From the sequence record JN849462.1: a DNA stretch of 64,000 bases. The stretch is one strand, 5' to 3'. The position numbers and the translations under genes were made by a program. Numbering within the stretch: position 1 is the first letter of the stretch; every line of letters starts with the position of its first letter. Below the pieces are notes generated by a model. The model worked only from the letters and a program-made list of their open reading frames with translations, was not told the origin of the DNA and did no database searches. Below, one piece after another: positions 5,054 to 22,241 of this stretch.

Positions 5054-5749
5054 ATGAAGAAGCTCGTACTTGTAGCTGCCGCTGCTGTAGCTCTTGTTGG
5101 ATGTGGTGATTTGCCACGTCTGGAAACTAAGACAGACAAGAAATTCACCACGGTTAATGCAGTTGTGAACAAAAAAGAGCGTGAAATGATTAACTACTGG
5201 ATGGCAGATGCTGACGGTAGTAACTATCTTTACAACAAGCTTTGGACTGCTCTTGCTACTCGTAACAAATACGGTTCTAATGCTGTGCGTCGTTCAGATG
5301 ATGAAGTCCCGTTCTGTGATGTCATTGTAGCCCTTGCTAAATCTGAAGAAGGTATTCGAAGCACGTACGAGCGCACATTTAACAATCAGTGGCGAACTCA
5401 ATACGGCATTAGTCTTAATCAGCAATGTGGCTATACTCCACCAGAAACACTCGAAGAGCAAGCAGAGCGCATTGAGCAACTTGAAATGCAAGCTGATTTG
5501 AAAAAGCGTGAGCAACAAGCACAGAGTATTGAAACGCTTGATGACGTTGCCGACGCGACGACTGAGCTACTTGATCCGCATGAGTACGACTATCTGATCG
5601 AATCGGCACGCGAGTGTAATCGAGCCAAAACCAAATTGCTTGAACTAACGCAAGCAGGCAAACCTCTGACACAAGCTGACGGCTCAGATGCACGTAAGCT
5701 AATTATCGAATGCAAAATGCATAAACTTGAAGTTGAATTGAATAAGTGA
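5054..5749 (+). CDS. lipoprotein, paralog of 18747..19466
   Basis: Lipobox LVGC; shares VPFCDVI, NQW..YGI.L..QC, CNRAK and KLEVELNK with the paralog. Confidence 0.7.
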   Translation: MKKLVLVAAAAVALVGCGDLPRLETKTDKKFTTVNAVVNKKEREMINYWMADADGSNYLYNKLWTALATRNKYGSNAVRRSDDEVPFCDVIVALAKSEEGIRSTYERTFNNQWRTQYGISLNQQCGYTPPETLEEQAERIEQLEMQADLKKREQQAQSIETLDDVADATTELLDPHEYDYLIESARECNRAKTKLLELTQAGKPLTQADGSDARKLIIECKMHKLEVELNK

Positions 5750-6539: not shown

Positions 6540-6567
6540 TTCCGATGCGGGTTGTTACGACATCCCG

Positions 6568-6575
6568 CATAAATA
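6568..6575 (+). promoter_or_regulatory. T4-type late promoter (CATAAATA)
   Basis: One mismatch to TATAAATA, 33 nt upstream of the ATG at 6608. Confidence 0.6.
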
Positions 6576-6607
6576 GTTCTATATGGACTAACAAGGAAAT
6601 TACGACA

Positions 6608-7138
6608 ATGCCAACTCCTACAACAGGTGCGATTTCAATCGGTACCGTTCGTGATTATTTCAGTAAGACAGGCGCAGCTTCATTGTCTCAGTACTACAGA
6701 GGCGGCGGTATTGTTCCTGATATTACTGAAAACGCTCACGTACCAACTTCAGGCGCGATTAGCTTGAATGATTTGCGCGGTGTATATCGCTTGTCAACGT
6801 ATACGACATCGTTTACGACAACATACAACACTACCGTATCAACATCGAATACGACTTCACGTAGCACGTCAAGAAGTACCGCTCGAAGTACTGCATACAG
6901 TACAACTCGCTCGACTGCGTATACTACTACTTGGACAACTAGCCGAACTACGTCGGTGACTAAAGGTTCGTATTCGACATCATACACGACTTCTCGTGCT
7001 ACAACTCGTTCAACTGCGTATAACACGACACGTTCAACAGCTTATACGTCTACGTGGACAACATCATGGACAACTACGTACAACACAACAATATCAACAT
7101 CAAACACAACTTCACGAAGCACGCAAGTTGCAGTTTAA
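6608..7138 (+). CDS. Thr/Ser-repeat late protein, putative virion appendage or adhesin
   Basis: N-terminal GAIS...SQYYRGGG...PTSGAISL domain, then about 115 aa of 4-residue T/S repeats; AAGGA RBS. Confidence 0.7.
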   Translation: MPTPTTGAISIGTVRDYFSKTGAASLSQYYRGGGIVPDITENAHVPTSGAISLNDLRGVYRLSTYTTSFTTTYNTTVSTSNTTSRSTSRSTARSTAYSTTRSTAYTTTWTTSRTTSVTKGSYSTSYTTSRATTRSTAYNTTRSTAYTSTWTTSWTTTYNTTISTSNTTSRSTQVAV

Positions 7139-7150
7139 CAAGGTTAAATT

Positions 7151-7369
7151 ATGAGCTACAATGAAGAACACGAGAATCGAATCAACGAGCTTGAGAACAA
7201 GGTTTCAAAGCTTGAGTTGATAATTGAAAATCTGGTTGAGTCTATGACATCAAACAGCGAAGCTATTATCGAACACATTGCATCACTTGAGACTGAGAGA
7301 GATTCGATTCTTGCATCATATGATGACAAACTTAATGAGATCGTGACCAAATATGAACCCACACAATAA
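7151..7369 (+). CDS. coiled-coil protein
   Basis: Heptad-like RINELENKVSKLE. Confidence 0.55.
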   Translation: MSYNEEHENRINELENKVSKLELIIENLVESMTSNSEAIIEHIASLETERDSILASYDDKLNEIVTKYEPTQ

Positions 7370-8207
7370 AGAAATGACAGGGTTCAATAACATTTCTCGC
7401 ACTGGTAAGTTGAAATTACAAGCCGATGCAGACGACGTCCGTACCATGTGTATGGACGTTGTTCGTTTATTGAACGCTAAAAATATACCATCTAACTTCG
7501 ACATCAATCACAATGACGGTGGCAACATCGGCGTGCATGAGTGGGTGTCACAAATCCGCTTCATCCACTTGAAATACATGAACGTCAATTTTCAAACGAA
7601 GATTTTCAAGCATGCCTATCACAACACTGAAAATGTCGTTGATTACTTTGACACGTTTAAGCATTCTGACAAATATCATCTTTCAGCGAAGCCTCGATTT
7701 TTAGAATATGAAAACGTCGTATTTCTATGCGGGTCGAACGTACTTGAATTAGCAATTGACTTTGACAAGATTGATGCGTTGGTCGAACAATATCCTGATT
7801 TGGTGATTAAACCTCACCCGATTACGACGTTGTATTACATCAATATGCTTAAATCTAGATATGGTTCAAAGCGCGTTCTTTCTCAGAAAATTAGTGGTGT
7901 TGATGTTCTAAAGTCTGCGAAGCGTGTTTGGTTGCCTTCAACGTCTGAATTCTGGTTCAGTGCTTTGAACTACGACAAAGAAATCGGGTTTATATCTAAA
8001 GATGGTTTCTGTGGAACATACACGTCAATCATCAACGCAGTGTGGGAATTGCATGAAGAAACTGGTGATTCGCTGAAAGATATTGTGAATAAAATTATCT
8101 CGTCACCTTACTCAGGTCTGTATGGTAGTATGGCAGACTTTGAAGCGCATCACGAGAAATACTGTAATGTGATTCTAGAACTAGGGGGTAATTTCGATAA
8201 TGTATGA
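7353..8207 (+). CDS. KpsS/KpsC-like capsule-type glycosyltransferase (GT-B)
   Basis: LVIKPHP motif and a C-terminal ST..F.AL...K segment. Confidence 0.5.
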   Translation: MNPHNKEMTGFNNISRTGKLKLQADADDVRTMCMDVVRLLNAKNIPSNFDINHNDGGNIGVHEWVSQIRFIHLKYMNVNFQTKIFKHAYHNTENVVDYFDTFKHSDKYHLSAKPRFLEYENVVFLCGSNVLELAIDFDKIDALVEQYPDLVIKPHPITTLYYINMLKSRYGSKRVLSQKISGVDVLKSAKRVWLPSTSEFWFSALNYDKEIGFISKDGFCGTYTSIINAVWELHEETGDSLKDIVNKIISSPYSGLYGSMADFEAHHEKYCNVILELGGNFDNV

Positions 8208-8832
8208 TTATGTAATTCACACTTCGATTAGTGACAAAAGTCAGATAAACCAACTAGCAATGTTTGTCGGGTCTTTCATCGAGACGCACAAAAAAGGTCG
8301 CGTTGTCTGCGTGACTGATCTTGAACTTGATTTCACGATGCCTCGACTGTCATTTGAGAAAAAACTACCCGAAGAGTACGTTTTCATTTCAGTTGACAAT
8401 CTATTTTTGCAAAAAACGTACGGCGTGGTTAGCTACATTGATAGCGGCACTTGGCGATGTACTTGGCAAAAGAATGACCATGATGAGTTCGTTATTAAAA
8501 AGCATGGCGAAAGAAGCGGGTTGATTAACCCTGATATTGCAATTGCAAATTACAATGTTTCGAGACATGGTGATCTCGACATGTATTACAACGCGCTTCG
8601 TTACATTGAGAACGCAATCACGATCAACTGCAAAGACTTTGCTCCTGCTGCTGAGAATAAAATCAACAGCTTTTACACGCTTGTATTTCCATGGGAGATT
8701 TATTTTCACGTTATGATCACTTACCAAGAGTATATTGATTCTGAATACGTTGAGCGAGTTCGCGCTAACTGTCATAAGTTCGCACACTCGGTTTATTACA
8801 GAAAATCAGGGTTGTTGCGTGATGGGTTATGA
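8200..8832 (+). CDS. hypothetical, possibly GT-A glycosyltransferase-like
   Basis: N-terminal ...RVVCVTD and a VFISVD segment; weak. Confidence 0.4.
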   Translation: MYDYVIHTSISDKSQINQLAMFVGSFIETHKKGRVVCVTDLELDFTMPRLSFEKKLPEEYVFISVDNLFLQKTYGVVSYIDSGTWRCTWQKNDHDEFVIKKHGERSGLINPDIAIANYNVSRHGDLDMYYNALRYIENAITINCKDFAPAAENKINSFYTLVFPWEIYFHVMITYQEYIDSEYVERVRANCHKFAHSVYYRKSGLLRDGL

Positions 8833-9505
8833 TGAGATAATTTTAGTATCTGGGCTTGATAGTTTAGTTCTATACGAATTTCTTGAACGAAAGCCACACC
8901 CTGTTTACTTTAAATGGGGTTTTGCTATCGACGAACTTGAAATGGCTGCTTTGCCTGAAGAAACAACTATCATAGAAATGCCAGAGATTTTGCATTTGAA
9001 ACATGATCCGTATGAGTTCAAGACGCCACGAAATCCCGATTTGATTGGTCGGAATACGTTGATGTTTAACTCAGTTTTCCATGCATTCAGACCAAACGTA
9101 ATTTATCGCGGGATGTTGAAAGGTGATGATTTCTATTACGACGCATCGCCTACGCATTCAGATGAAATCGCAGCTATGTGGTCGAAAATGCTGGATAAAG
9201 AGTGTCGAATTGAACAACCGTTTAAAGACAAAACGAAACGTGACATAATGCAAATGGCGGTTGAATACGGGATTGACGCGAATTCATTGCAGCATTGTTA
9301 CAATCGAGAACATAACTGTGGTCGATGTAGCAAGTGTGTAGATGCACATGTTAATTCTATGTATACCGACAATCCAGACATCATGTGGCTGAAACGAATA
9401 GTTAATGACTCGGGTATGGCAGCATTGGCTAATCACATGTTTGGTGTTGATACCGTTGACAGAATCAAGGAATTTCTAGATGAATTTGATCGAACAGACC
9501 GCTGA
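8822..9505 (+). CDS. QueC-like PP-loop ATPase with Zn motif
   Basis: ILVSGLDS, GRNTLM, TKRDI, CY...NCGRCSKC; start reassigned from 8735. Confidence 0.65.
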   Translation: MGYDEIILVSGLDSLVLYEFLERKPHPVYFKWGFAIDELEMAALPEETTIIEMPEILHLKHDPYEFKTPRNPDLIGRNTLMFNSVFHAFRPNVIYRGMLKGDDFYYDASPTHSDEIAAMWSKMLDKECRIEQPFKDKTKRDIMQMAVEYGIDANSLQHCYNREHNCGRCSKCVDAHVNSMYTDNPDIMWLKRIVNDSGMAALANHMFGVDTVDRIKEFLDEFDRTDR

Positions 9506-10374
9506 TAAATTCGAGCATAGTTACCGAGAAGACGTTCAAGGCGTACAGTGGTATTTCGGTAGTCGAACGCATGATTTTTATCTGTATGGAATAGACTCTC
9601 TTATTGATAAAGTCAAAGACTACGATTTTATTGAAATCAAGCATGTTCAAGAGGGTACGCTGGTTAAACGAGGCGAAGCTGCGGTCACGGTTACGATTAC
9701 AGATCATAGTCGTATCGCATATGGGAACATGATTGAAACATTGTTGTACAATGAGTTGTGGTATTCAAGCACGGTCGGTACGATTTTACACCGTTGCCTT
9801 GATGTGTTGCATGAAAACGGCTATGACGCCCGTTCAGCATACCCTCAAATAGGACGAGCTAGTTCAACGCCGCAACAATCAGCTAAAGCAAGGGATATGT
9901 TCGCTCGTATATTTTATCAATCATCGAATGAGAAAATACCCGTTGCGATGCACAGTGATATTCTAATCAACGGTGAGGAATATTGCATGGAGCATTATAA
10001 CGGCATCATGATTGATACTTTCGATAAGCAAGCTTGCATTGACTTGATCAACAAGAAAGACTTTCGTGGGACTGTGATGGTTGACTCTAAGCCAATAATT
10101 AGAAACAATTGAGAAAGTTCTAGCTGAAACAAAATGCTTTGTTGCACAAGCTGAAAGTGTTACACTCGATGAGTGGATAGAGATAGTGCGACATTTTAAA
10201 GGTAATAATCGAATTTTCTACGGGATTGGTAGCTTTGCATTTAGCAATATATCACGAGACACATTTGGGTTGATTTACAAAGTGTGTGCAGTTAAGAGAA
10301 ACGACAATTGGATCGGTGTTTCAAAGATGACGACAGGTAAACAAACATCGGCTGGTTATAAGGTTATAGGTTAG
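9480..10374 (+). pseudogene. divergent NAMPT/NAPRTase-like gene split by a +1 frame change near 10095-10110
   Basis: ORF 9480..10112 carries the N-terminal motifs (IETLLYNELWYSSTV, MHS, IDTFD, VDS). The +1 frame 10099..10374 encodes RIFYGIGSF...SRDTFGLIYKV...SK, matching the NAMPT C-terminus. Confidence 0.6.
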
Positions 10375-10376
10375 TT

Positions 10377-11366
10377 ATGAATTATTGTATATCGCCATTT
10401 ACATCGCCGTCTATTACACCAGACGGTTTTAAAATTTGCACCATGCCAGGTCAGAAAGTATACCCTGATATTTCATTCTGGAATAGTGATGAAGTGATCA
10501 AGATTCGCGAACAGATTATCGCTGGTGAAATACCTGAATCGTGTAAGACATGTCGTAGTATGCGTGACGGGTTGATTGTGTCAAAAGAAAAACCAACTGA
10601 TACTCATGTTGACTTGAATTTCAAAGCTCTTTACATTGCGCGGTCGAACAAGTGTGAATATGCTTGTGAAATGTGCAGTTCATCAATCTCACATAGCTAT
10701 GACAAGAAATACAATGACGGTAAGTTGGGGATTATCGAGAATGACTTTGATGTTATTCCGTACCTGCACGAAACACAAGCCGTTGCTATTTCGGGCGGGA
10801 ACCCTGTCATTGACAAAAAGGTTGCAGAGATTCTTGAGAATCTAGACCCTGACGTGGTAAAACATTTCATCATTACCTCAAATGGGACAGTCTTTCCAGA
10901 CAGATTCTTGAATGCAATTAAGCGATTGAAATGCAACGCGACTATGATATTCTCTATGGACGGACCGAAAGAGTTTAATGAAGTGGTTCGATCTGGTGCG
11001 AAGCAAGAGAGAATCTATCGCACCATTAATCGAGTTCTTGACGAGATTGAAGATTACCCAAACTTGCATGTGGCAATTGAATACACTTTCACGAATAAGT
11101 CAATTCATCACTACGTTGATTTGTATGATGAAATGCTCTTCGAGATCAACCCGAAGCATTTGAAAAACAACAAAGTCAATGTGATTGCGAATATGTGTAC
11201 ATACCCGCATCACCTTAGCGTTACAACTGTTCCCAAATCTGTCATTGATGACATATTGTTCAATCAGTTGCCATATTTGAGAAAGCAACCCAGCCCATTG
11301 TCAAATCAATTCAAACTTGGTTATGATAAGTTTTTGACTCAGTATCACAACAGCGTGATTATGTGA
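10377..11366 (+). CDS. radical SAM protein with N-terminal Cys-rich (twitch-like) segment
   Basis: CEYACEMC, ISGGNP, TSNGT, FSMDG. Confidence 0.85.
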   Translation: MNYCISPFTSPSITPDGFKICTMPGQKVYPDISFWNSDEVIKIREQIIAGEIPESCKTCRSMRDGLIVSKEKPTDTHVDLNFKALYIARSNKCEYACEMCSSSISHSYDKKYNDGKLGIIENDFDVIPYLHETQAVAISGGNPVIDKKVAEILENLDPDVVKHFIITSNGTVFPDRFLNAIKRLKCNATMIFSMDGPKEFNEVVRSGAKQERIYRTINRVLDEIEDYPNLHVAIEYTFTNKSIHHYVDLYDEMLFEINPKHLKNNKVNVIANMCTYPHHLSVTTVPKSVIDDILFNQLPYLRKQPSPLSNQFKLGYDKFLTQYHNSVIM

Positions 11367-12483
11367 TCAGATCATACGCTTTGATGTGTGAGTAAAACTC
11401 TGGACACGCAGACGATAAATTAGTTTTCGTCTTCGTGTCTATTCTCTTGTTAAGCACAAAGAATTCAGGGTTGAATTTACAAACACTGTGTTCCAGAGTA
11501 AGACATTCAGCAACGTGCTTGAATGGTCTAGACAAATCCTCACGCCCATCTTTTAAATACGCTTCTTCTTTCACTTTGAATCTTGATAATAGCTGGTCTC
11601 GAAATGCAACTGGAATGTTGTAAATTGAGTATGGATTATCAGGCTCACCAACGACATGTACAGACAGACGTACACGTTCACCATCATAAAGAGAATCAAA
11701 ATCTGAAACCAATGTTTCAAGATGTTCAAGAGTCACGTTTGACACGGTCGCAGTGATGACTACATCAAAGTGTTCCTTGATGATTTCAATGTTTGATTTG
11801 ACTTTCTTGATGTCTGCAAACAATCGAATATAATCTTGGTATTCTCGTAGACCGTCGATTGATACGAACACCGTTGATGCATTAGCTTCTTTAAGCGATT
11901 TGATGAGATCTGAGCCATCGGCTAACACTAGTGATGAACCATTCGTGAAAATATTCACCGTGCCTTTAATGTCGCCTACGCTGCGAAGAACTTCAGGAGC
12001 ATTTGACGAGCGGGTAATTTCACCACCTAGAATTGTCAATGATGAAAGCCCTTTGCTGATTGTGTTGATTGTCGTACTCAAATCATTGAATCGAGTACTT
12101 GAATCTTCTTCATTAAACAATCTAGCTTTCAAGTCTGATAATTTGCTATAGCAGTAACGACAAGCGTGGTTACATTCATTACTAGGGAATACTTGTAGCC
12201 AGCGAACTGAATCGGCAGGCATGATTGGTGAAACTTCAGAATCGTGTTCGGTTAGGCGCTGTGGATCATTATCAGTGATGCACATTTGACATGCCTTTGA
12301 TAGCTTGCTCATGTCGTGGTTTATCATCGCTTCGCGATAAGCGACTAGCTTTTCATCATTCCAAGCGTCTGCTAGGGTCTTTTCGTCTGTAAACCATTCA
12401 TAATCAGCCGAACAGCAAAACGTAATTTGGTTGTTTGCTCGTGTGATGAACTGCTTGAACGGCATATAACATAGTGGTTTCAT
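11359..12483 (-). CDS. radical SAM protein with N-terminal Cys-rich (twitch-like) segment
   Basis: CNHACRYC, ILGGE, FTNGS, VSIDG. Confidence 0.85.
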   Translation of the reverse strand: MKPLCYMPFKQFITRANNQITFCCSADYEWFTDEKTLADAWNDEKLVAYREAMINHDMSKLSKACQMCITDNDPQRLTEHDSEVSPIMPADSVRWLQVFPSNECNHACRYCYSKLSDLKARLFNEEDSSTRFNDLSTTINTISKGLSSLTILGGEITRSSNAPEVLRSVGDIKGTVNIFTNGSSLVLADGSDLIKSLKEANASTVFVSIDGLREYQDYIRLFADIKKVKSNIEIIKEHFDVVITATVSNVTLEHLETLVSDFDSLYDGERVRLSVHVVGEPDNPYSIYNIPVAFRDQLLSRFKVKEEAYLKDGREDLSRPFKHVAECLTLEHSVCKFNPEFFVLNKRIDTKTKTNLSSACPEFYSHIKAYDLIT

Positions 12484-12493
12484 GTATCTGTCC

Positions 12494-13066
12494 TTAGTTA
12501 AAAATGCTACTTGTATATATAGCGGTCTTCAGGGCATTGAAATGGTCGTCAACTCTATTCACGTGTATGCATTCAATGTCAAATCTTTCTTGGATTTCTC
12601 GGATGTTGTCTATTGAATCGTCAATGAAGTACTTCACATCATGAAGTTCGCACAGCTTATCAACATACTTTGCCTTTGAGTCGAAGTACTCAATCGAAAT
12701 CACTTCGCTAATCATTCCTGGGAATAACGCATTTAGGTTATGCACGCGATTTGACCATGCGGCTCTACTCATACTGAACTTGGTAAGTGCAATGACGTTG
12801 TACCGGTCTGAGAGTTCGCGTAGCGCATCGTGCGCGTCTTCGTATGCTGGTATGTACTTTGCACACTCATGTTCATTGTACGCCCCTATAAGCTTTCCTA
12901 TTTGCATGTCGCTCACGTTAATAAATAAAGAGCGTGCATCGGTATCAGTATTTGAACCGTTGATATTCAAATTATCAAGCATGCCTAATTGCATCATGAA
13001 GAATGGCAAGTTGGCTTTCCAGTTAAGCAAAACCCCGTCCACATCTATGATGATAGTCTTTTTCAT
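12494..13066 (-). CDS. HAD-family 5'(3')-nucleotidase-like phosphatase
   Basis: IIIDVDGVL motif I and YFIDDS motif IV; start reassigned. Confidence 0.75.
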   Translation of the reverse strand: MKKTIIIDVDGVLLNWKANLPFFMMQLGMLDNLNINGSNTDTDARSLFINVSDMQIGKLIGAYNEHECAKYIPAYEDAHDALRELSDRYNVIALTKFSMSRAAWSNRVHNLNALFPGMISEVISIEYFDSKAKYVDKLCELHDVKYFIDDSIDNIREIQERFDIECIHVNRVDDHFNALKTAIYTSSIFN

Positions 13067-13203
13067 TACTACCTCGAAAAAAATTTTTAAATTTTTCGAA
13101 AAAAGTATTGACACTTTGTTTCGTTCATGTAATACTTATCTCAACTTGACGAAACAAGTTAAACAAAACAAGACAACATTTAAATCAAAAAAAGGAAATA
13201 CAC

Positions 13204-13440
13204 ATGAAAAACTTCAAATCAATCGCAACTGCACTTCTTCTAACTATGACTTTCTCTACCGGTGCTTTCGCACACGGTTCAGGTGGTACTCTAGGTGGCA
13301 ACCTTGGCTTAGAAATGTGCAAAATCGGAGCAATCAACTGCGGCTTCCCTAAACAAGAAGTTAAAGTTGAGAAAGAAGCACCAAAAGCTGAAAAGGCTGA
13401 GGTGAAAGAAGTTAAGCTGCCAAACGACATGACTGCTTAA
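13204..13440 (+). CDS. small secreted protein
   Basis: Signal peptide ending in AFA; strong RBS. Confidence 0.6.
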   Translation: MKNFKSIATALLLTMTFSTGAFAHGSGGTLGGNLGLEMCKIGAINCGFPKQEVKVEKEAPKAEKAEVKEVKLPNDMTA

Positions 13441-13443
13441 TAC

Positions 13444-14619
13444 ATGCGTATATTATGCGACATACCGTTTAGAAATGTGGGTGATGCTATTATTGTGCTA
13501 GACCCACTTCTAAAACTAGCACGCAATCTTAGACGCAATCGCAAGAAATTTCACATATGTGTACCCCTTGCTGCATTTATGGTTCGTGGGCAGTTGAAAG
13601 GATTAATTGAGTATGTAATCCAACAGCATGACGTGCAAGACAATGTAACGGTTGTTGATTATGATGAGTTATCGGGTATTGACAATGACTTTGATCTGTA
13701 TGTTCACTACAGCACAAGTCTGGGTGGATATCTATACAATAATCGTCAATTTATGGGTGCCAAGCGTAAAGTAACAAGCAAAGTAAAAGAAGATAACTCA
13801 ATCGACTACACATTATTTGATGATGTGATTGACACTACCGCATTTGCACAATTAAATTTCCCATTATGGGCTCATTATAATGAGGTTAATAGGCAGATAT
13901 TAGAACGATATTTTGATATTTCGTGTGATGCAATTCGATACTCATTGGAACTTGACTGGAACTCGCATACGCCAGTTCCCAACCCTCAACGCAGCGACAA
14001 GACGTTTATGTTTCATGTTTGTGATGATATGTCATCGTCTGCGCGGTGGGATAATTCCGACTATATCAAATTCATAAAATGCTTGAATTCACAAATGAAA
14101 AACTTGCCTAAGATTTCATTTGTAGTTCATAATAATGAAGATTCAGTTCGAGAAATCGTCAACTCTATTGATAACGACGTTGAGTATATACAAGGTGAAT
14201 TAAAGGATATTGCAGAACATATCAATAATAATGTTCATGCTGTTTTCACTCATTCAACGGGGATTTTACACCTTGCTGCTGCACTATCATGCACGACCGT
14301 TGAACTGTCAAGGTCTCAACAGAAATATCATGGTATAGAATGGTGCCCTCCGTGTCGCAGAGGTAAGCATTTCATAATATCACCTAGATTTTTTGGATGG
14401 GACGATTTGGTCGATATAGACATAGAACTAGCCAGTAAGAAGGTATATTCATGGATGTTCGACCGACTATATTGCCCGATAGACGATACTCTTTCGGCAT
14501 ATCGAACGCTTTACTCGACTATCCTTGAAATGGAAACTCGAATTAGTAAAGATGATTTGTCAACTTTAGCATTTGCAATAGATAACAAAATTAATCAAGT
14601 TAATAATTTCAAATTTTAA
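13444..14619 (+). CDS. GT9 (heptosyltransferase-like) glycosyltransferase
   Basis: NVGDAIIV.P.L and THSTGILHLAAAL motifs. Confidence 0.65.
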   Translation: MRILCDIPFRNVGDAIIVLDPLLKLARNLRRNRKKFHICVPLAAFMVRGQLKGLIEYVIQQHDVQDNVTVVDYDELSGIDNDFDLYVHYSTSLGGYLYNNRQFMGAKRKVTSKVKEDNSIDYTLFDDVIDTTAFAQLNFPLWAHYNEVNRQILERYFDISCDAIRYSLELDWNSHTPVPNPQRSDKTFMFHVCDDMSSSARWDNSDYIKFIKCLNSQMKNLPKISFVVHNNEDSVREIVNSIDNDVEYIQGELKDIAEHINNNVHAVFTHSTGILHLAAALSCTTVELSRSQQKYHGIEWCPPCRRGKHFIISPRFFGWDDLVDIDIELASKKVYSWMFDRLYCPIDDTLSAYRTLYSTILEMETRISKDDLSTLAFAIDNKINQVNNFKF

Positions 14620-16657: not shown

Positions 16658-16900
16658 ATGAAAGCAACTATCCCACAACTTAAAAAGAAAATCAATTCAC
16701 TTGCTGACAAATACGGTTACGCTTTTGACAAAAACGCACCGTACTACGTAAATGACGGTCGCATCAAAGCAATCGAAGCTGCAATCATTACTGTCAAAGA
16801 AGACGGTGAAGCGAATCCAACTCGTCGTTATGAGATCAGCGAAAAGCAGCTTGTGTCACTGAACAACTGGGTTCGTGATTTGAAACACAAATATCTGTGA
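16658..16900 (+). CDS. hypothetical early protein
   Basis: GAGAGAACATTATG leader. Confidence 0.6.
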   Translation: MKATIPQLKKKINSLADKYGYAFDKNAPYYVNDGRIKAIEAAIITVKEDGEANPTRRYEISEKQLVSLNNWVRDLKHKYL

Positions 16901-16906
16901 GGTAGT

Positions 16907-17146
16907 ATGTACGCAATACAAGCAACTAGTCATTTCGTTCAATTCGTTCTAAAGAGCGTGAGCGTAAATGGCTTCCCGAAATACGTGCCAATGTATACGT
17001 TTAATTTGGGAATCATAACAACATTCGCAACTCTTGAAGAATGTCAAAAGTTCATCGACGAGTACGATCCCAACCCCGACGCATGTCTGCCATGGCGTGC
17101 ATATAAACTACACGATCTTGAAATCGCTCAACTGGAGACAAAATAA
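16907..17146 (+). CDS. hypothetical protein
   Basis: GAGG RBS. Confidence 0.5.
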   Translation: MYAIQATSHFVQFVLKSVSVNGFPKYVPMYTFNLGIITTFATLEECQKFIDEYDPNPDACLPWRAYKLHDLEIAQLETK

Positions 17147-18414
17147 TGGGTTCATTTAACACTACTTGCGCAATCACTCGTACGCCAATTCAAGAAGGCG
17201 GACTTGCGCGTGTCTTTTTCTTAGAAATGGACGCATTTGCAACAAACTATTACGGTCGTCAAGGTCTGTTTAAGAACATCATGATGGGATGTGGTTGCTA
17301 CCCATGGGATAATTTCAAGATCATCGGTTACCCTCTGCTCGGCAAATATGCCGATTACAACAATTACGAGTTTGAAGATGCAGATATGGCTAATATGACG
17401 CTGACTGCAATCAACAAACGATACGTACCAAATCGAGTAGCTGAAGGCAAGACGCTTGAAGATTACAATGAATATCATGATTACATGGAAATCGACGAGA
17501 TTTCAGACATGAGTCAGCTTCAAGATATGGAACACAGTGGTTCGCTTCGAGTTAAAGGTGCGCATGGTAATGTAACTGCGGTTGTTAAAATGGCAATGCA
17601 TGAAGAAGTGTACCAAATGATGCTTGAAGGTAACGTGACTGAGGGTTGGGGTGATGATGCGAAGACGTATTCATTTGCCGACGACTTGAAACGTCTCACA
17701 GACAAGTACAGTGGTTCAGTATCTGGTTTTGATGCATTAACCGAGAAACAACAGAAGCGAATGATTGACATGCGTGATGAGCTTTACGCTAAGGCTGACG
17801 CAGGCGAAATCAATGAACGCACTAATGAACCATATACTCGTGAAGAGGCTGATCATAGCTTCGAACAAATGGTTGGATGGCTTGCTGAAGATCGTTTTGA
17901 GCTTGGTGACGAACGCGCTGAATGGTTTGCACATTCATCCCATTACCGAGATATGGCAGATCTTAAAGACAATCAAGAACTAGTTCGCAAACTAGCTGAA
18001 GCAGTCGTGGGTGCAAAATGGTGTGCTCGTTGGATGATGTGTAATAACTATGAATTCGCGCCAGTGATGACATGCGGTCAAGATTACGATACTGCTTCTC
18101 ATGCGTCGCGACTTCGTAAGCTTGCTGACATCATCGAGTCGAAGAAAAACAAATATCACTACGAAGAGCACGTTGAACTTGATGTAGTTCGTTCTGAGCG
18201 CATTGAACTATCTCTAAGTAATCTGAAAGAGCGTTTTGCTGATTGGTACGATGAAGATGAACAAGAATATCAAGATCTACTGTCAGCGATTGAAAGTGTA
18301 AAAGAACAATCAAGCTTTGTTTACGGTGATGGTTCTATTTTCGATAAATTCATTGAAGAATACGACGTTCTACGTGATGTTGAAGAAAATACACAAATTC
18401 ATTTCAAAAAGTAG
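17146..18414 (+). CDS. hypothetical acidic protein
   Basis: 422-aa ORF coupled to the upstream stop. Confidence 0.65.
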   Translation: MGSFNTTCAITRTPIQEGGLARVFFLEMDAFATNYYGRQGLFKNIMMGCGCYPWDNFKIIGYPLLGKYADYNNYEFEDADMANMTLTAINKRYVPNRVAEGKTLEDYNEYHDYMEIDEISDMSQLQDMEHSGSLRVKGAHGNVTAVVKMAMHEEVYQMMLEGNVTEGWGDDAKTYSFADDLKRLTDKYSGSVSGFDALTEKQQKRMIDMRDELYAKADAGEINERTNEPYTREEADHSFEQMVGWLAEDRFELGDERAEWFAHSSHYRDMADLKDNQELVRKLAEAVVGAKWCARWMMCNNYEFAPVMTCGQDYDTASHASRLRKLADIIESKKNKYHYEEHVELDVVRSERIELSLSNLKERFADWYDEDEQEYQDLLSAIESVKEQSSFVYGDGSIFDKFIEEYDVLRDVEENTQIHFKK

Positions 18415-18474
18415 TTGACAAGGTGCGTGAGTGGCTGTAATATGTCACTCAACGCCTAACGAGAGAACAATATT

Positions 18475-18735
18475 ATGAAAGATGAAATTACGCTGCACAT
18501 TAAGAATCATTGGTTGCACCGTCGCGCATATTTCGTACTTTACAATAAACCGATGAAATTCAGAAAGAAAGCATTGGCTGAGTGGGAAGAAAAACGCAGT
18601 GAATTTTGGTACGTAGTTCAACGACTTAATCCTGAGTTTTTCGCGCAGTGTCCTGAAGGTATGCAACCGTATTTGTCTTGCGTACCAACCCCGCGCAATG
18701 GCGCACAATACTTCTACATCAAATTTGACAAATAA
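18475..18735 (+). CDS. hypothetical early protein
   Basis: TTGACA-17-TAATAT promoter and GAGAG RBS. Confidence 0.55.
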   Translation: MKDEITLHIKNHWLHRRAYFVLYNKPMKFRKKALAEWEEKRSEFWYVVQRLNPEFFAQCPEGMQPYLSCVPTPRNGAQYFYIKFDK

Positions 18736-18746
18736 GAGAGAACATC

Positions 18747-19466
18747 ATGAAAAAATTAATCGCAATCGTAGCACTAGCAGCATCAGTAGCAATGACTGGT
18801 TGTACTGACACCATCGACAATTCAGCAACTGATCAGCTAAAAGCAGCCATGCCAGTTCTTTCTCAAACTGAAAAAGATATGCTGAATGTATTCGCTGCTC
18901 CGAACTTCTTGAGCCGTTACGACAACATGTATGCAGAAGTGGTCAAAAATCGCGTACACTTCGGTCAGAAGCCGATTCCACGAGCAGATACAGAAGTGCC
19001 GTTCTGTGATGTAATCGACGCTGTAATCGCAGCAGAGCGCGAAAACAATCTAACAGAACGTGATTACTCACTGAGCAATCAATGGAAGATGAAATACGGC
19101 ATCACACTTCTTGAGCAATGTAATCAATCAGACCGTGCTCGTATTGAAATGCAGATCGCTAAAGCAAAAGCCGATGCTGAAGCAGCTAAAGATCGAGTAA
19201 TCATCGAAGAACAAGAATTCAGCAAGAAAGAAATCAAAGCTGAGAAAATCATCGAAGACACCGTTGTAATCAAAGATGATGTGCTACTATCACCTGAACT
19301 TGTTCGTGAACTACGTGGCTCAGTTAAAGACTGTAATCGCGCTAAAGTCAAGCTAATGAGTGTAGTTGATGCCGGTGAGCAGCTAACTACAAAGCACTAC
19401 GACGAAGTTAAAGGTCTAGTTCTACAGTGTGAAATGTTGAAACTAGAAGTCGAACTCAACAAATAA
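18747..19466 (+). CDS. lipoprotein, paralog of 5054..5749
   Basis: MTGC lipobox and shared Cys-containing motifs. Confidence 0.7.
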   Translation: MKKLIAIVALAASVAMTGCTDTIDNSATDQLKAAMPVLSQTEKDMLNVFAAPNFLSRYDNMYAEVVKNRVHFGQKPIPRADTEVPFCDVIDAVIAAERENNLTERDYSLSNQWKMKYGITLLEQCNQSDRARIEMQIAKAKADAEAAKDRVIIEEQEFSKKEIKAEKIIEDTVVIKDDVLLSPELVRELRGSVKDCNRAKVKLMSVVDAGEQLTTKHYDEVKGLVLQCEMLKLEVELNK

Positions 19467-19918: not shown

Positions 19919-20971
19919 TCATTTCACCATTTTGATTTGAATCTGATTGTCCATGTAAGCCATTTTCTTTTCAAATTCAACATCATATTCTGGTCGATGT
20001 TCGTATTCGACTGAAAGCATTTGCTTCAGACAACGGTACAATTCCGACTTGTAATACCCTTCTTTCATTCCCTTCATCTGTTCATATTGCTTTTTCATAG
20101 CAGCTTTGATTATCTTCGGGTCCATGAATTTGATTGACATTTCTCGCGGTGCTTTTACTGTGCCAAAGTCAACAAACACCTGAGCCTTTTCAGCTACTTG
20201 AATGAAGTCATAAATCGTGTCATAACTCATTCGACTTAGCGTGTGGTGCATACAAACATGTTTGCTATGTTCTTTTAGCAACGGTACATTTGCAAGCATC
20301 AAGTCGTGGTCGATGTTCTGACGAATGTATTCGTTGCGCTCTTTTCCGCCGTCACATGAAATTGTAAACACTAGACGATGTTTGTACTTTTTACATATGG
20401 CTAGAATCTTCTTCGCAAGTGGCGTATGCAACACAGTACCATTTGTCAGAATGTAAACTTCCGCATTTGTTTCTTCCATGACTTCAGTCAGAACTTCGAC
20501 TGTTCTCTTGTCCATGAACGGTTCGCCGCCGTATAGCACAACAGTTTCAACACCCTTCGGGATACTGAAATCGAGTTGTGTGTAATCGTAATGGTCGTCA
20601 ATGTCATACAAGTCCATGTATGTTTTGCTATTCTTGCCATAGCACATTCGACACGCTAGGTTACATTTGTTTGACATCAATATTTGAATTGTTCTAGGAT
20701 GCTCTTCGAGTGCTTCATATTCGAAGTACTTCTGATCAGACAATTCGCCATAACTCATACATTCTTTGCAGTATTCTGGTAAAGTGTCATACTCAAACAT
20801 TTTGGCACGATGTTCATTGATGATGTCACTGTGCCACCAGTCTTCAACGTTCGGGAATGGTTCACTTAGCTGAGAACAGCAAATGTGATACCCATCAGGT
20901 TTTGCGTCACGTGTATTAAAGGGAGAGCCACAAAGTGGTCTCTTCCCGTCTTTAAATCCGAATTTATCCAT
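19919..20971 (-). CDS. radical SAM protein with N-terminal Cys-rich (twitch-like) segment
   Basis: CNLACRMC, LYGGEP, LTNGT, ISCDG. Confidence 0.85.
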   Translation of the reverse strand: MDKFGFKDGKRPLCGSPFNTRDAKPDGYHICCSQLSEPFPNVEDWWHSDIINEHRAKMFEYDTLPEYCKECMSYGELSDQKYFEYEALEEHPRTIQILMSNKCNLACRMCYGKNSKTYMDLYDIDDHYDYTQLDFSIPKGVETVVLYGGEPFMDKRTVEVLTEVMEETNAEVYILTNGTVLHTPLAKKILAICKKYKHRLVFTISCDGGKERNEYIRQNIDHDLMLANVPLLKEHSKHVCMHHTLSRMSYDTIYDFIQVAEKAQVFVDFGTVKAPREMSIKFMDPKIIKAAMKKQYEQMKGMKEGYYKSELYRCLKQMLSVEYEHRPEYDVEFEKKMAYMDNQIQIKMVK

Positions 20972-21243
20972 TAATCTAGCTCATCAAGAAGTGATTGAAA
21001 TTCCTCGTCGCGTTCAGCGTCGATTGTACCAGTCATCAACTCTGTTAGAGTCTTCAACGACTTGATCTCTGGTGGTTGAGGGCGTAGATCTTCGAGAATG
21101 TGAATGATTGACTCGGCTGGGAGATCGTGATTTACGATCTCATCTGGCAGGTGGTGTTTGTAAACGCAGTCGTCGCCCCAATCAATAACTACTGCATGTT
21201 CCCATTTGTCGATTTCTAGTATTTTAAAATTTGGTTTCATCAT
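20971..21243 (-). CDS. hypothetical protein
   Basis: Coupled between the GT and radical SAM genes. Confidence 0.5.
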   Translation of the reverse strand: MMKPNFKILEIDKWEHAVVIDWGDDCVYKHHLPDEIVNHDLPAESIIHILEDLRPQPPEIKSLKTLTELMTGTIDAERDEEFQSLLDELD

Positions 21244-22241
21244 AAGCCCCAGAGTTCTTTCCAATGTGTTTTAGCATCTTGTCGATACTTCTCAATGTCA
21301 AATTTTTGATATTTCTGTTCGATTGCATCATCAATGACGCGAATCAACGTATCATTGTTTATATCAGCACGAATCACTGGGAAAATAAAATCCCTTGTGT
21401 AAGGTGCGTCATGCTGAACAATACAAGGTATGTACTGACATGCTTCTAATAACGCATATGGCATAATCTCGATTCGAGACATGTGAAGCAACACTTTACT
21501 TTTCATCATATGTGCTATGACTCGCTCACGCCGTTGACAAGTTTCGACTATACAATCAACCCCACTCGGGATTCTTATTGGTTCGGTTGTGAATAGACGA
21601 ATTTTAAGACCGCTGTATGCAAGCGCGTTTAGCATTTCGGGTATCTGCTTACGTTTGTATGCACCTGACACGATAATCACGTCAGACGCTTCAGCAGCGT
21701 CAATATCAGCTTGTGATATAGACGGAAGCTCAAATGGTTCAAATGCAGTCACATGTTTGCCACCAATTACTTCTCGACCCCATTGTGCAATCCCGTTCGA
21801 TTGAGCAATGTTAGTGACTAATGACGTTGACATCATGTGTCGCCATTGAGGTAAGTTGTAAATTTGATGAATGTCCATGTATTCGCGATATGAATCTGGT
21901 ACTATCAAGTCACCGAAATGATGTTGGTTGTAACAACGGCGCTTCGCTTCGATACATGCGCGGAGTGCTTCATATGAATGCGTGTAGATAATCGCTTCGC
22001 TATCAATCGCGTTGATAACCATTGCGTTTGCCTTGTAGTCTTTATAAGACCGTTTCGTTAAAATGAAGTCACACCCGAAATCCCATTTGCTCACGTGTGG
22101 ACACGATTCGTCTCCGAGTACAATAACTTTGACATCACAGTTTAGTGATTGCATTAAACGAACGTGATCTTGAATGAATGTGTAAATACCGCCGCCAATT
22201 CCCAACATAAAGTCAGTTACTACGTAGCGAACTTTTTTCAT
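21240..22241 (-). CDS. GT4-like glycosyltransferase
   Basis: N-terminal GIGGG and C-terminal SRIEIMPYALLEA (E-x7-E). Confidence 0.65.
   Translation of the reverse strand: MKKVRYVVTDFMLGIGGGIYTFIQDHVRLMQSLNCDVKVIVLGDESCPHVSKWDFGCDFILTKRSYKDYKANAMVINAIDSEAIIYTHSYEALRACIEAKRRCYNQHHFGDLIVPDSYREYMDIHQIYNLPQWRHMMSTSLVTNIAQSNGIAQWGREVIGGKHVTAFEPFELPSISQADIDAAEASDVIIVSGAYKRKQIPEMLNALAYSGLKIRLFTTEPIRIPSGVDCIVETCQRRERVIAHMMKSKVLLHMSRIEIMPYALLEACQYIPCIVQHDAPYTRDFIFPVIRADINNDTLIRVIDDAIEQKYQKFDIEKYRQDAKTHWKELWGL

Follow-up and report, generated by a model that had tools for sequence, protein, structure and literature searches.

The DNA analysed here (the window) is a stretch of 64,000 nucleotides (nt) from sequence record JN849462.1, and the locus of interest, at its positions 6608–14619, begins with a gene for a protein of threonine- and serine-rich (Thr/Ser) tetrad repeats and continues with genes for a coiled-coil protein, glycosyltransferase-like proteins, a QueC-like ATPase, a NAMPT-like phosphoribosyltransferase, two radical S-adenosylmethionine (SAM) proteins and a HAD-type phosphatase-like protein (Table 1). 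The locus is 100% identical to Vibrio phage phi-pp2 (JN849462.1 130500–138700), a KVP40-type Schizotequatrovirus, in which these genes are pp2_249 to pp2_259, and 13 close relatives match it at 95–98%, only up to window position 13441. A sequence-only reading of this DNA had listed the open reading frames (ORFs), all of which exist as placed, and had described tight gene coupling, which is also borne out, since the junctions from 7138 to 11366 are all overlaps or gaps of at most 12 nt.

Table 1. Features of the phi-pp2 locus and of a second unit downstream (window coordinates; aa, amino acids).
Feature	Position	Strand	Basis
Late-promoter-like box CATAAATA	6569-6576	+	7/8 of T4-type TATAAATA; overlaps 3' arm of a 7-bp hairpin (6545-6572)
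Thr/Ser tetrad-repeat protein pp2_249, 176 aa	6608-7138	+	Sequence composition, homologues
Coiled-coil protein, 72 aa	7151-7369	+	Homologous small genes between Thr/Ser gene and transferase
GT-B glycosyltransferase, beta-Kdo-transferase-like fold, 284 aa	7353-8207	+	AlphaFold2 model, Foldseek, VIA, family profile
GT-A/GT8-like protein, 210 aa	8200-8832	+	Moderate model, weak fold matches
QueC-family PP-loop ATPase paralogue	8822-9505	+	PF06508; SGLDS variant loop, Cys-rich Zn motif retained
Short type II phosphoribosyltransferase (NAMPT/NAPRT-like)	9480-10374	+	KVP40 alignment; frameshifted here
Radical SAM 1 (N-terminal twitch-like)	10377-11366	+	PF04055
Radical SAM 2 (paralogue)	11359-12483	-	PF04055; convergent, 8-nt overlap with radical SAM 1
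HAD-type phosphatase-like protein (T4 gp30.2 homologue)	12494-13066	-	DVDGV motif I, phrog_420
GT9-like (GT-B-like) protein	13444-14619	+	Pfam GT9 sub-threshold; strain-dependent presence
Second unit: radical SAM 3 (19919-20971), 97-aa ORF, 333-aa protein	19919-22241	-	PF04055; faint GT4 signal

The translationally coupled operon lies downstream of a late-promoter-like box. The exact T4-type TATAAATA expected of the late promoter that had been proposed upstream of the Thr/Ser gene is absent, but the box CATAAATA is present and is conserved in KVP40; two other CATAAATA boxes in the window also lie 25–35 nt upstream of ORF starts, and in the related contig L010 an exact TATAAATA precedes the Thr/Ser gene. 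We favour position 6608 as the start of the Thr/Ser gene because it has an AAGGA ribosome site, and the alternative ATG at 6545 sits inside the hairpin. The predicted protein begins with an adaptor-like domain of ~60 aa, continues with a pair of Thr/Ser tetrad arms that flank a TKGS turn, and closes with V-x-V. The repeat part is 63% Ser plus Thr, is internally duplicated around TKGS, and has non-Ser/Thr residues at every fourth position (period 4, z about 5 at lags 4, 8 and 12). Within window positions 6794–7138 the blocks run A-B then B'-A' around the turn, not A-B-A'-B'; the block T-T-T-Y-N-T-T-(V/I)-S-T-S-N-T-T-S-R-S-T starts the first arm and ends the second, an order that would suit long hairpin-like pairing.

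Full-length homologues of pp2_249 are present in L009, L010, L012 and L013, and its N-terminal ~60 aa also head small proteins with other (Ig-like or Gly-rich) C-terminal domains (L006:5001–5471, L006:6044–6502, L007:5001–5471 and L008:5001–5699). In Xanthomonas phage RTH11, Stenotrophomonas phage DLP_6 and Ralstonia phage YL1, genes for proteins with this N-domain lie directly 3' of genes for giant tail fibres. We interpret the N-domain as a module that serves for docking and the tetrad arms as the part displayed, and the module may be a general fibre-docking adaptor; no second copy of it was found in the nearest genome.

The 284-aa protein had been called a KpsS-like glycosyltransferase, and its fold and nucleotide-binding motif agree with that call, but membership of the named family by sequence does not. 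An exhaustive profile-free search gave 200 representatives of its family, and the AlphaFold2 model made from the family alignment has a predicted local distance difference test (pLDDT) score of 92.6. The top 17 PDB rows returned by Foldseek for this model are all WbbB or KpsC, retaining transferases of beta-linked 3-deoxy-D-manno-oct-2-ulosonic acid (Kdo), with E values down to 8e-6; VIA gave Z scores of 10.2 for WbbB (228 residues), 10.1 for KpsC and 9.3 for KrkA, with a polysialyltransferase at 8.8 and generic GT-B enzymes at 7.9 or below. The family profile finds KpsC as its best match among PDB sequences, in an alignment that covers the K-x-H-P motif. In an alignment of 93 family sequences Y108, G127, K153, H155 and P156 are invariant, D50, K107, N129, G171, E199 and G255 are conserved in at least 90%, and D106 and S198 in 86–89%; the invariant K153-x-H155-P156 aligns with the K-x-H-P of KpsC, whose HP motif binds the phosphate of cytidine monophosphate (CMP). 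Only four of the 93 members match Pfam Capsule_synth, at E 1e-3 or weaker, and the window protein is not one of them; all Pfam matches of family members are to CMP-sugar transferase families (Capsule_synth, GT52 and polysialyltransferase). Searches of PDB sequences with the single 284-aa, 210-aa, GT9-like, HAD and 333-aa ("GT4") proteins gave nothing useful. The model and the motif suggest that the 284-aa enzyme would use a CMP-activated ulosonic acid as its donor.

Small coiled-coil homologues lie between the Thr/Ser gene and the transferase gene in Vibrio phage 6E35.1a, L009, L010 and L012, and the transferases of family members P0009 and P0029 carry a fused N-terminal coiled coil of similar type (pairwise E 2e-4), which makes the 72-aa protein a probable transferase subunit or adaptor; in P0107 the transferase is fused to a SAM methyltransferase. 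Homologues of the 210-aa protein lie 3' of the transferase gene in the same four loci. The model of this protein is of moderate quality (pLDDT 71); its VIA matches are GlyE (Z 8.9, the top match), glycogenin (8.5) and LgtC (7.8), and its Foldseek matches are all GT-A folds at E 2e-3 or weaker. The earlier suggestion of a GT-A enzyme is supported only weakly, through resemblance of this moderate model to GT8 enzymes, and the protein is possibly a second transferase or a non-catalytic partner.

Does the association of the Thr/Ser gene with the transferase gene extend beyond KVP40-type phages? Relatives of the 284-aa gene were found by tblastn, and the loci of diverse family members were then inspected. 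Of 14 kinds of phage context, which span T4-, T7- and P1-like phages as well as marine lineages, 13 have a Thr/Ser tetrad-repeat gene directly upstream of the transferase gene, and the sole context without a tetrad protein is L014/L015. Relatives in IMG/VR were found by a pattern scan built from a 10-sequence alignment, as the 93-sequence alignment was too diverse for scanning; a scan with a single family protein gave no match, and a word-index search gave two clusters only. The pattern scan found 196 relatives, and among the 78 loci that were fetched with enough upstream sequence, 76 have a same-strand frame of at least 50% Ser plus Thr within 3 kb upstream, compared with 0 of 1124 control frames from the same loci; the two misses have Ser plus Thr fractions of 0.46 and 0.48. 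The core transferase is thus almost never without a Thr/Ser tetrad gene upstream, which answers, for this core, the objection that the enzymes might occur independently of the protein.

Most of the individual loci place this pair among tail-fibre genes. The T7-like Caulobacter phages Lullwater and DCM have the tetrad protein directly upstream, and in Lullwater the transferase gene is 3' of a tail-fibre gene and a gene for a 215-aa Thr/Ser/Tyr/Trp tetrad protein; T4-like Cr30 has a fibre-like gene, a 116-aa tetrad protein and then the transferase, with a small coiled-coil gene close by. In L009, genes for S74 tail fibres are followed by those for a 184-aa pp2_249 homologue (with the N-domain and V-x-V end of the phi-pp2 protein), the coiled coil, the transferase, the 210-aa homologue, a radical SAM protein, a GalE-like epimerase and a further fibre; P1-like L012 has a tail fibre, a 379-aa Thr/Ser protein, coiled coil, transferase, 210-aa homologue and radical SAM; and L010/L011 have a 367-aa Thr/Ser protein, coiled coil, transferase, 210-aa homologue, a QueC–radical SAM fusion and an NAPRT-like gene. 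The tetrad protein is also directly upstream in L013, L016, L017, L018/L019, L020 and L021/L022, often with a tail assembly chaperone or S74 domain as well, and marine L106 has a tail fibre, a 1063-aa tetrad protein, transferase, an uncharacterised protein, a GT29 sialyl-motif protein and a radical SAM–SPASM protein. Genes for fibres, Peptidase_S74 or tail assembly chaperones adjoin the cassette in Lullwater/DCM, L009, L012, L020, L021 and L106, and one tetrad protein includes, as a fusion, an S74 intramolecular-chaperone domain. Synteny, co-occurrence and fusions, together with the modelled folds and the motifs, are what the analysis shows directly.

The accessory genes vary: L009 has the GalE-like epimerase, L014 an FkbM methyltransferase and a GT8 gene, 6E35.1a a kinase plus nucleotidyltransferase, and the marine lineage the GT29 sialyl-motif protein, and recurrent types also include methyltransferases, a sulfotransferase-like gene and GT8-, GT9- and GT29-like genes, a repertoire whose sequence similarities fit glycan tailoring. 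Many of the upstream frames in IMG/VR are giant tetrad proteins of 370–1550 aa with terminal domains of their own. Those of the marine loci L080, L090, L087, L095, L104 and L106 are Thr-rich, 900–1550 aa long and about 50% Ser plus Thr throughout; they have a common N-terminal domain and a C-terminal domain that ends in a W-D-G-S-x-W motif, and each of their genes is followed by a K-x-H-P transferase gene and then usually by a GT29 sialyl-motif gene.

The explanation that we favour, and which we regard as evenly balanced between right and wrong, is that the locus encodes a Thr/Ser tetrad-repeat fibre protein plus the enzymes that decorate it by O-glycosylation from a CMP-ulosonic acid. The earlier proposal that the Thr/Ser protein is a virion protein and the partner of the glycosyltransferase-like genes is, in this core, strongly supported by the co-occurrence, the tail-fibre modules and the N-domain, and its recurrence beside tail-fibre genes across many unrelated phages makes the pairing a probable, hitherto undescribed system for sugar-coating a tail appendage; we found no description of such a cassette in the literature on phage Kdo-type transferases, Thr-rich tail-fibre proteins, or twitch radical SAM enzymes with glycosyltransferases. 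We infer the acceptor, the donor, the location in the virion and all of the chemistry as follows: the 176-aa protein would dock to a tail-fibre or baseplate component through its N-terminal module and display its two tetrad arms, whose Thr/Ser hydroxyls would be O-glycosylated in the cytoplasm, before assembly, by the 284-aa enzyme, a predicted GT-B transferase with the fold and HP motif of the CMP-sugar-dependent Kdo and sialyl transferases. Its donor would be a CMP-activated ulosonic acid, most likely CMP-Kdo from the host, because no other donor of this class is available in every Gram-negative host, and this would explain how the Caulobacter phages manage with the pair alone. The coiled coil would serve the enzyme as subunit or adaptor, and the 210-aa GT8-like protein would add a second sugar or hold the acceptor. 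Subsequent tailoring or extension would fall to lineage-specific genes, which in KVP40-type phages would be those for the QueC-like ATPase together with radical SAM 1, for radical SAM 2, for the NAMPT-like phosphoribosyltransferase, for the GT9-like enzyme and perhaps for the HAD phosphatase. DNA as the target of modification was judged unlikely, with the canonical deazaguanine/DpdA cluster located elsewhere and the transferase tracking a protein gene, not DNA-metabolism genes; liquid chromatography–mass spectrometry of 6E351A DNA, for which only dPreQ1 was reported (PMC12028318), also weighs against it.

Several observations count against this explanation. The Asp nucleophile equivalent to WbbB D232 or KpsC D160 could not be placed in the 284-aa protein (D50, conserved in 96%, and D106, in 89%, are candidates), the protein falls under the Pfam threshold for every named family including Capsule_synth, and no conserved DxD was found in the 210-aa family. 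A further gene is shared by 66 of 80 IMG/VR loci, so these come mostly from one marine lineage and are not independent events. The island of the KVP40-type phages is a plastic region in which the cassette does not adjoin tail-fibre genes; the QueC-like, NAMPT-like and HAD genes accompany the pair in these phages only, and the NAMPT-like gene of phi-pp2 is broken by an additional A near 10101 (+1 frame), with a stop at 10112 that leaves 210 aa. The homologous region of phage 6E351A has been labelled an ancestral "anti-defense island", and none of the island's annotated products was detected in the 6E351A virion proteome (PMC12028318). We rejected that proteome as evidence against a virion location, because its annotation lacked the Thr/Ser ORF and it could not have detected the protein: the 177-aa gene at L005:10237–10770 of Vibrio phage 6E35.1a is annotated in GenBank MW824377, and the re-annotation behind the 6E351A proteomics has only ORFs of 36, 29 and 127 aa at that site.

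The sequence-only reading had joined all of these genes in a single decoration pathway, and this is supported for the core pair but not, in that form, for the QueC-like, NAMPT-like, N-twitch radical SAM and HAD genes, which accompany the pair in KVP40-type phages only and could serve another purpose. The calls themselves fared variously. The QueC-like protein passes PF06508 (36.6 bits against a cut-off of 22, over profile positions 95–200 only) and best matches the PADLOC QueC model of the cyclic-oligonucleotide-based antiphage signalling system (CBASS) type, over its full length at 2.8e-13; its score against the TIGR00364 equivalog is 28 bits against a cut-off of 150. All three QueC-like orthologues have SGLDS in place of the canonical SGGxDS loop, and a canonical phage QueC is encoded elsewhere in the genome. 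In L010 (4477–6153) a QueC-like domain is fused to a radical SAM 1 orthologue, with both domains above their Pfam thresholds, and radical SAM 1 is 61% identical to the C-terminal half of this fusion. The radical SAM calls are all upheld, as the three proteins pass PF04055 and have a visible CxxxCxxC motif; their best NCBIfam match is the N-terminal-twitch NF033640, at 114–135 bits against a cut-off of 170. The NAMPT-like call is sound in fold and, in an orthologue, by Pfam, but the frame in phi-pp2 is not intact: the KVP40 gene (L002:11982–12875) is intact and encodes 297 aa, its ESM Atlas model has a template modelling (TM) score of 0.90 to NAMPT over all 297 residues, and the 6E35.1a orthologue matches PF04095 at 27.6 bits (cut-off 20.8). 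The 260 nt after the phi-pp2 insertion (window 10095–10112) still encode the KVP40 C-terminus in the +1 frame, and since the downstream frame is conserved the break is either an error in the sequence or a pseudogene of very recent origin. Full-length enzymes have about 470–500 aa, so that the protein is short when intact too, and it does not reach equivalog cut-offs. The HAD protein is sub-threshold by Pfam (E 0.007), but its motif I is visible and it matches phrog_420 at E 2e-38 and is annotated gp30.2; T4 has its gp30.2 gene and is not known to carry such a cassette, and the HAD gene is at best a tentative member of the pathway.

The locus might accordingly be split, with the Thr/Ser protein, coiled coil, transferase and 210-aa protein forming a decoration system, and the QueC-like, NAMPT-like, radical SAM and HAD genes a separate nucleotide or nicotinamide adenine dinucleotide (NAD) counter-defence pathway that, like the neighbouring NadV, would act for example on nicotinate, converting it to nicotinic acid mononucleotide (NaMN) and then amidating it, or would conjugate a carboxylated base to protein in the manner of Cap9. 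We consider this rather unlikely, although it is the most serious of the alternatives. The island adjoins nadV and bears its published anti-defense name, the best match of the QueC-like protein is a CBASS-type model, QueC-family enzymes amidate or conjugate carboxylates, with proteins among their targets (bioRxiv 10.1101/2025.04.06.647259; PMC13082051), and these four gene types are absent from cassettes outside the KVP40-type phages. However, these genes share a translationally coupled operon with those for the transferases, gene order is preserved even between phages with transferases of only 34% identity (phi-pp2/KVP40 and 6E35.1a, both with the Thr/Ser gene upstream), radical SAM genes of other types recur in the unrelated cassettes L009, L012 and L106, and the anti-defense label consists of hidden Markov model (HMM) matches only. 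If the genes do act in the decoration, the radical SAM enzymes may act on the sugar or on the protein, and because QueC-family enzymes activate carboxylates it is conceivable, as speculation, that amidation or conjugation occurs at the ulosonic acid carboxylate or at that of a nicotinate-type nucleotide.

Could the transferases act on something other than the tetrad protein? Their closest solved relatives, WbbB, KpsC and KpsS, build lipopolysaccharide (LPS) and capsule glycans, GT9-like enzymes act on the LPS core, and K566/K567 have, in place of this island, another that carries a glycosyltransferase gene and lipid A genes, all of which would fit modification of the host envelope (LPS core or capsule), or the building of a free glycan, for superinfection exclusion or receptor masking, with the Thr/Ser protein a mere neighbouring fibre accessory. 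We think this improbable, as it hardly explains the near-obligate adjacency of the tetrad gene across lytic T4-, T7- and P1-like phages; moreover, the transferase sequence has no membrane segment or lipid-binding feature, and the operon lies downstream of a late-promoter-like box. There might alternatively be no glycosylation at all, in which case the tetrad protein would be a fibre rich in beta structure and the 284-aa protein, together with the coiled coil, its dedicated folding or assembly factor that keeps a transferase fold; tail fibres commonly need dedicated chaperones encoded just 3', tail-assembly-chaperone genes lie within the same cassettes, and one tetrad protein carries the S74 chaperone domain. 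This we judge very improbable, since K153, H155, P156, S198, E199 and D106-K107-Y108, the residues of nucleotide-sugar binding, are invariant or nearly so among about 90 diverse members, and cassette variants contain sugar-metabolism accessory genes. Least probable of all is that the radical SAM enzymes are the main modifiers and the tetrad protein a giant substrate resembling those of ribosomally synthesised and post-translationally modified peptides (Tyr/Trp/Arg cross-links or Ser/Thr oxidation), with glycosylation secondary: radical SAM genes do recur in four cassette lineages, the L009 and L012 enzymes are closest, weakly, to SPASM enzymes that modify proteins and peptides (anaerobic sulfatase maturase, PapB and cyclophane formers), L106 has a full radical SAM plus SPASM protein, and aromatic residues recur with a spacing of four in the tetrad protein, but the Caulobacter phages have the pair with no radical SAM gene, only 15 of 80 IMG/VR loci have one within the fetched flanks, and all of these family matches are far under their cut-offs.

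The remaining genes of the island are more variable. The GT9-like protein is just sub-threshold for Pfam PF01075 (21.2 bits against a cut-off of 22) but matches NCBIfam heptosyltransferase I at E 5e-5. Its gene, at a fixed site between nadV and the gene for a small secreted peptide, is lacking in KVP40 and 12 other near-identical genomes but occurs at that site in VS1/VS2/QD01 (46% identity) and some 6E35-type phages (30%). The N-terminal half of fusion P0126, considered as a GT9-like domain, was dropped (E 0.035, and no BLAST similarity to the window GT9-like protein). In the second unit, which had been described as a GT4 plus a radical SAM gene, radical SAM 3 stands but the GT4 signal of the 333-aa protein is faint (Glycos_transf_1 at E 0.043 only, with no PDB sequence match). 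The small protein at window 13204–13440 combines a signal peptide and a stretch rich in Gly with a C-x-I-G-A-I-x-C-G motif and a tail rich in Lys and Glu, and is kept between phi-pp2 and 6E35.1a (L005:19795–19980). Paralogous phrog_8733-type proteins at window 5054–5749 (with a lipoprotein-like signal) and 18747–19466 flank the island, and their 6E351A homologues (VP6E351A_0309 and _0334) were both found in virions (PMC12028318, Table S4). The 6E35-type phages have three additional island genes (L005:13151–13822, 16869–17792 and 17789–19123); their products include a 223-aa protein with an H-x-D...H pattern like that of 2-oxoglutarate–Fe(II) oxygenases, a 307-aa protein with no assigned function and a 444-aa protein in which a MobA-like nucleotidyltransferase is joined to a kinase-like domain.

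The proposed fibre decoration resembles several known systems in part. WbbB (GT99) and KpsC/KpsS (GT107) are the best structural matches of the 284-aa protein (Foldseek E about 1e-5, VIA Z 9.3–10.2 over 214–228 residues) and have the K-x-H-P nucleotide-binding motif in common with it, but the phage protein is only about 10–13% identical to them, is much smaller and is under the Capsule_synth threshold; its gene lies beside a Thr/Ser repeat gene, not in LPS or capsule loci, and its proposed acceptor is a protein, not a glycolipid. The flagellin Maf/FlmG transferases (Caulobacter FlmG, PMC7591256) O-glycosylate Ser/Thr in the cytoplasm before assembly, with CMP-pseudaminic or CMP-legionaminic acid and a dedicated soluble transferase, much as is proposed here; the phage enzyme, however, is of another family with no tetratricopeptide repeat (TPR) recognition domain, and its predicted substrate is a phage-encoded low-complexity tetrad protein. 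The serine-rich repeat glycoproteins of Gram-positive bacteria (modified by GtfA/GtfB and then by GlyE/GT8) likewise are hydroxyl-rich repeat adhesins encoded beside their own transferases, with a GT8-like second component that recalls GlyE as the top VIA match of the 210-aa model, and a possibly non-catalytic partner would fit; they differ in having uridine diphosphate (UDP)-sugar GT4 initiating enzymes and accessory Sec export, whereas the phage locus would have a Kdo-transferase-like initiator and Thr-rich tetrads with periodic Arg/Tyr/Trp. In mycobacteriophages, GT2/GT4-type enzymes reportedly modify the C-terminal tails of actinophage capsid and tail-tube proteins (a 2023 finding of Freeman et al., echoed in PMC11256854), and phage-encoded glycosyltransferases would act on virion proteins here as well, but the repeat protein here is a dedicated one, the enzyme is of the CMP-sugar type, the hosts are Gram-negative and the genes lie in a tail-fibre context. 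Finally, QueC-family members that act beyond preQ0 (Cap9 protein deazaguanylation, WbpG N-sugar amidotransferases and LarE) share the PP-loop ATPase fold and Cys-rich motif with the QueC-like protein, a candidate joiner of carboxylate and amine, which differs in its SGLDS loop, its score under the QueC equivalog cut-off, its pairing and sometimes fusion with an N-twitch radical SAM, and its place beside a short NAMPT-like gene.

To our knowledge, virion glycosylation has been demonstrated for actinophages only. Taken to its full extent, the proposal would be that T4-, T7- and P1-like and abundant marine phages have a widespread system in which a mucin-like tetrad fibre (100 to >1500 aa) is densely O-glycosylated with an ulosonic acid of host type (e.g., Kdo) in the cytoplasm, with further radical SAM chemistry and, in KVP40-type phages, QueC-like and phosphoribosyltransferase steps, so that the tail carries an LPS-core-like or new glycoconjugate that governs adsorption or shields the fibre; we think it unlikely that all of this is correct. 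If the proposal is true, phages of Gram-negative bacteria would routinely build glycoprotein appendages of their own from a purpose-built Thr/Ser substrate and a Kdo/sialyl-type transferase, the substrate would be the first protein acceptor for the Kdo-type transferase fold, and the very large Thr-rich ORFs that form a family in marine viromes would have an explanation. It would also matter for how therapeutic Vibrio phages adsorb, which hosts they infect and how the immune system recognises them.

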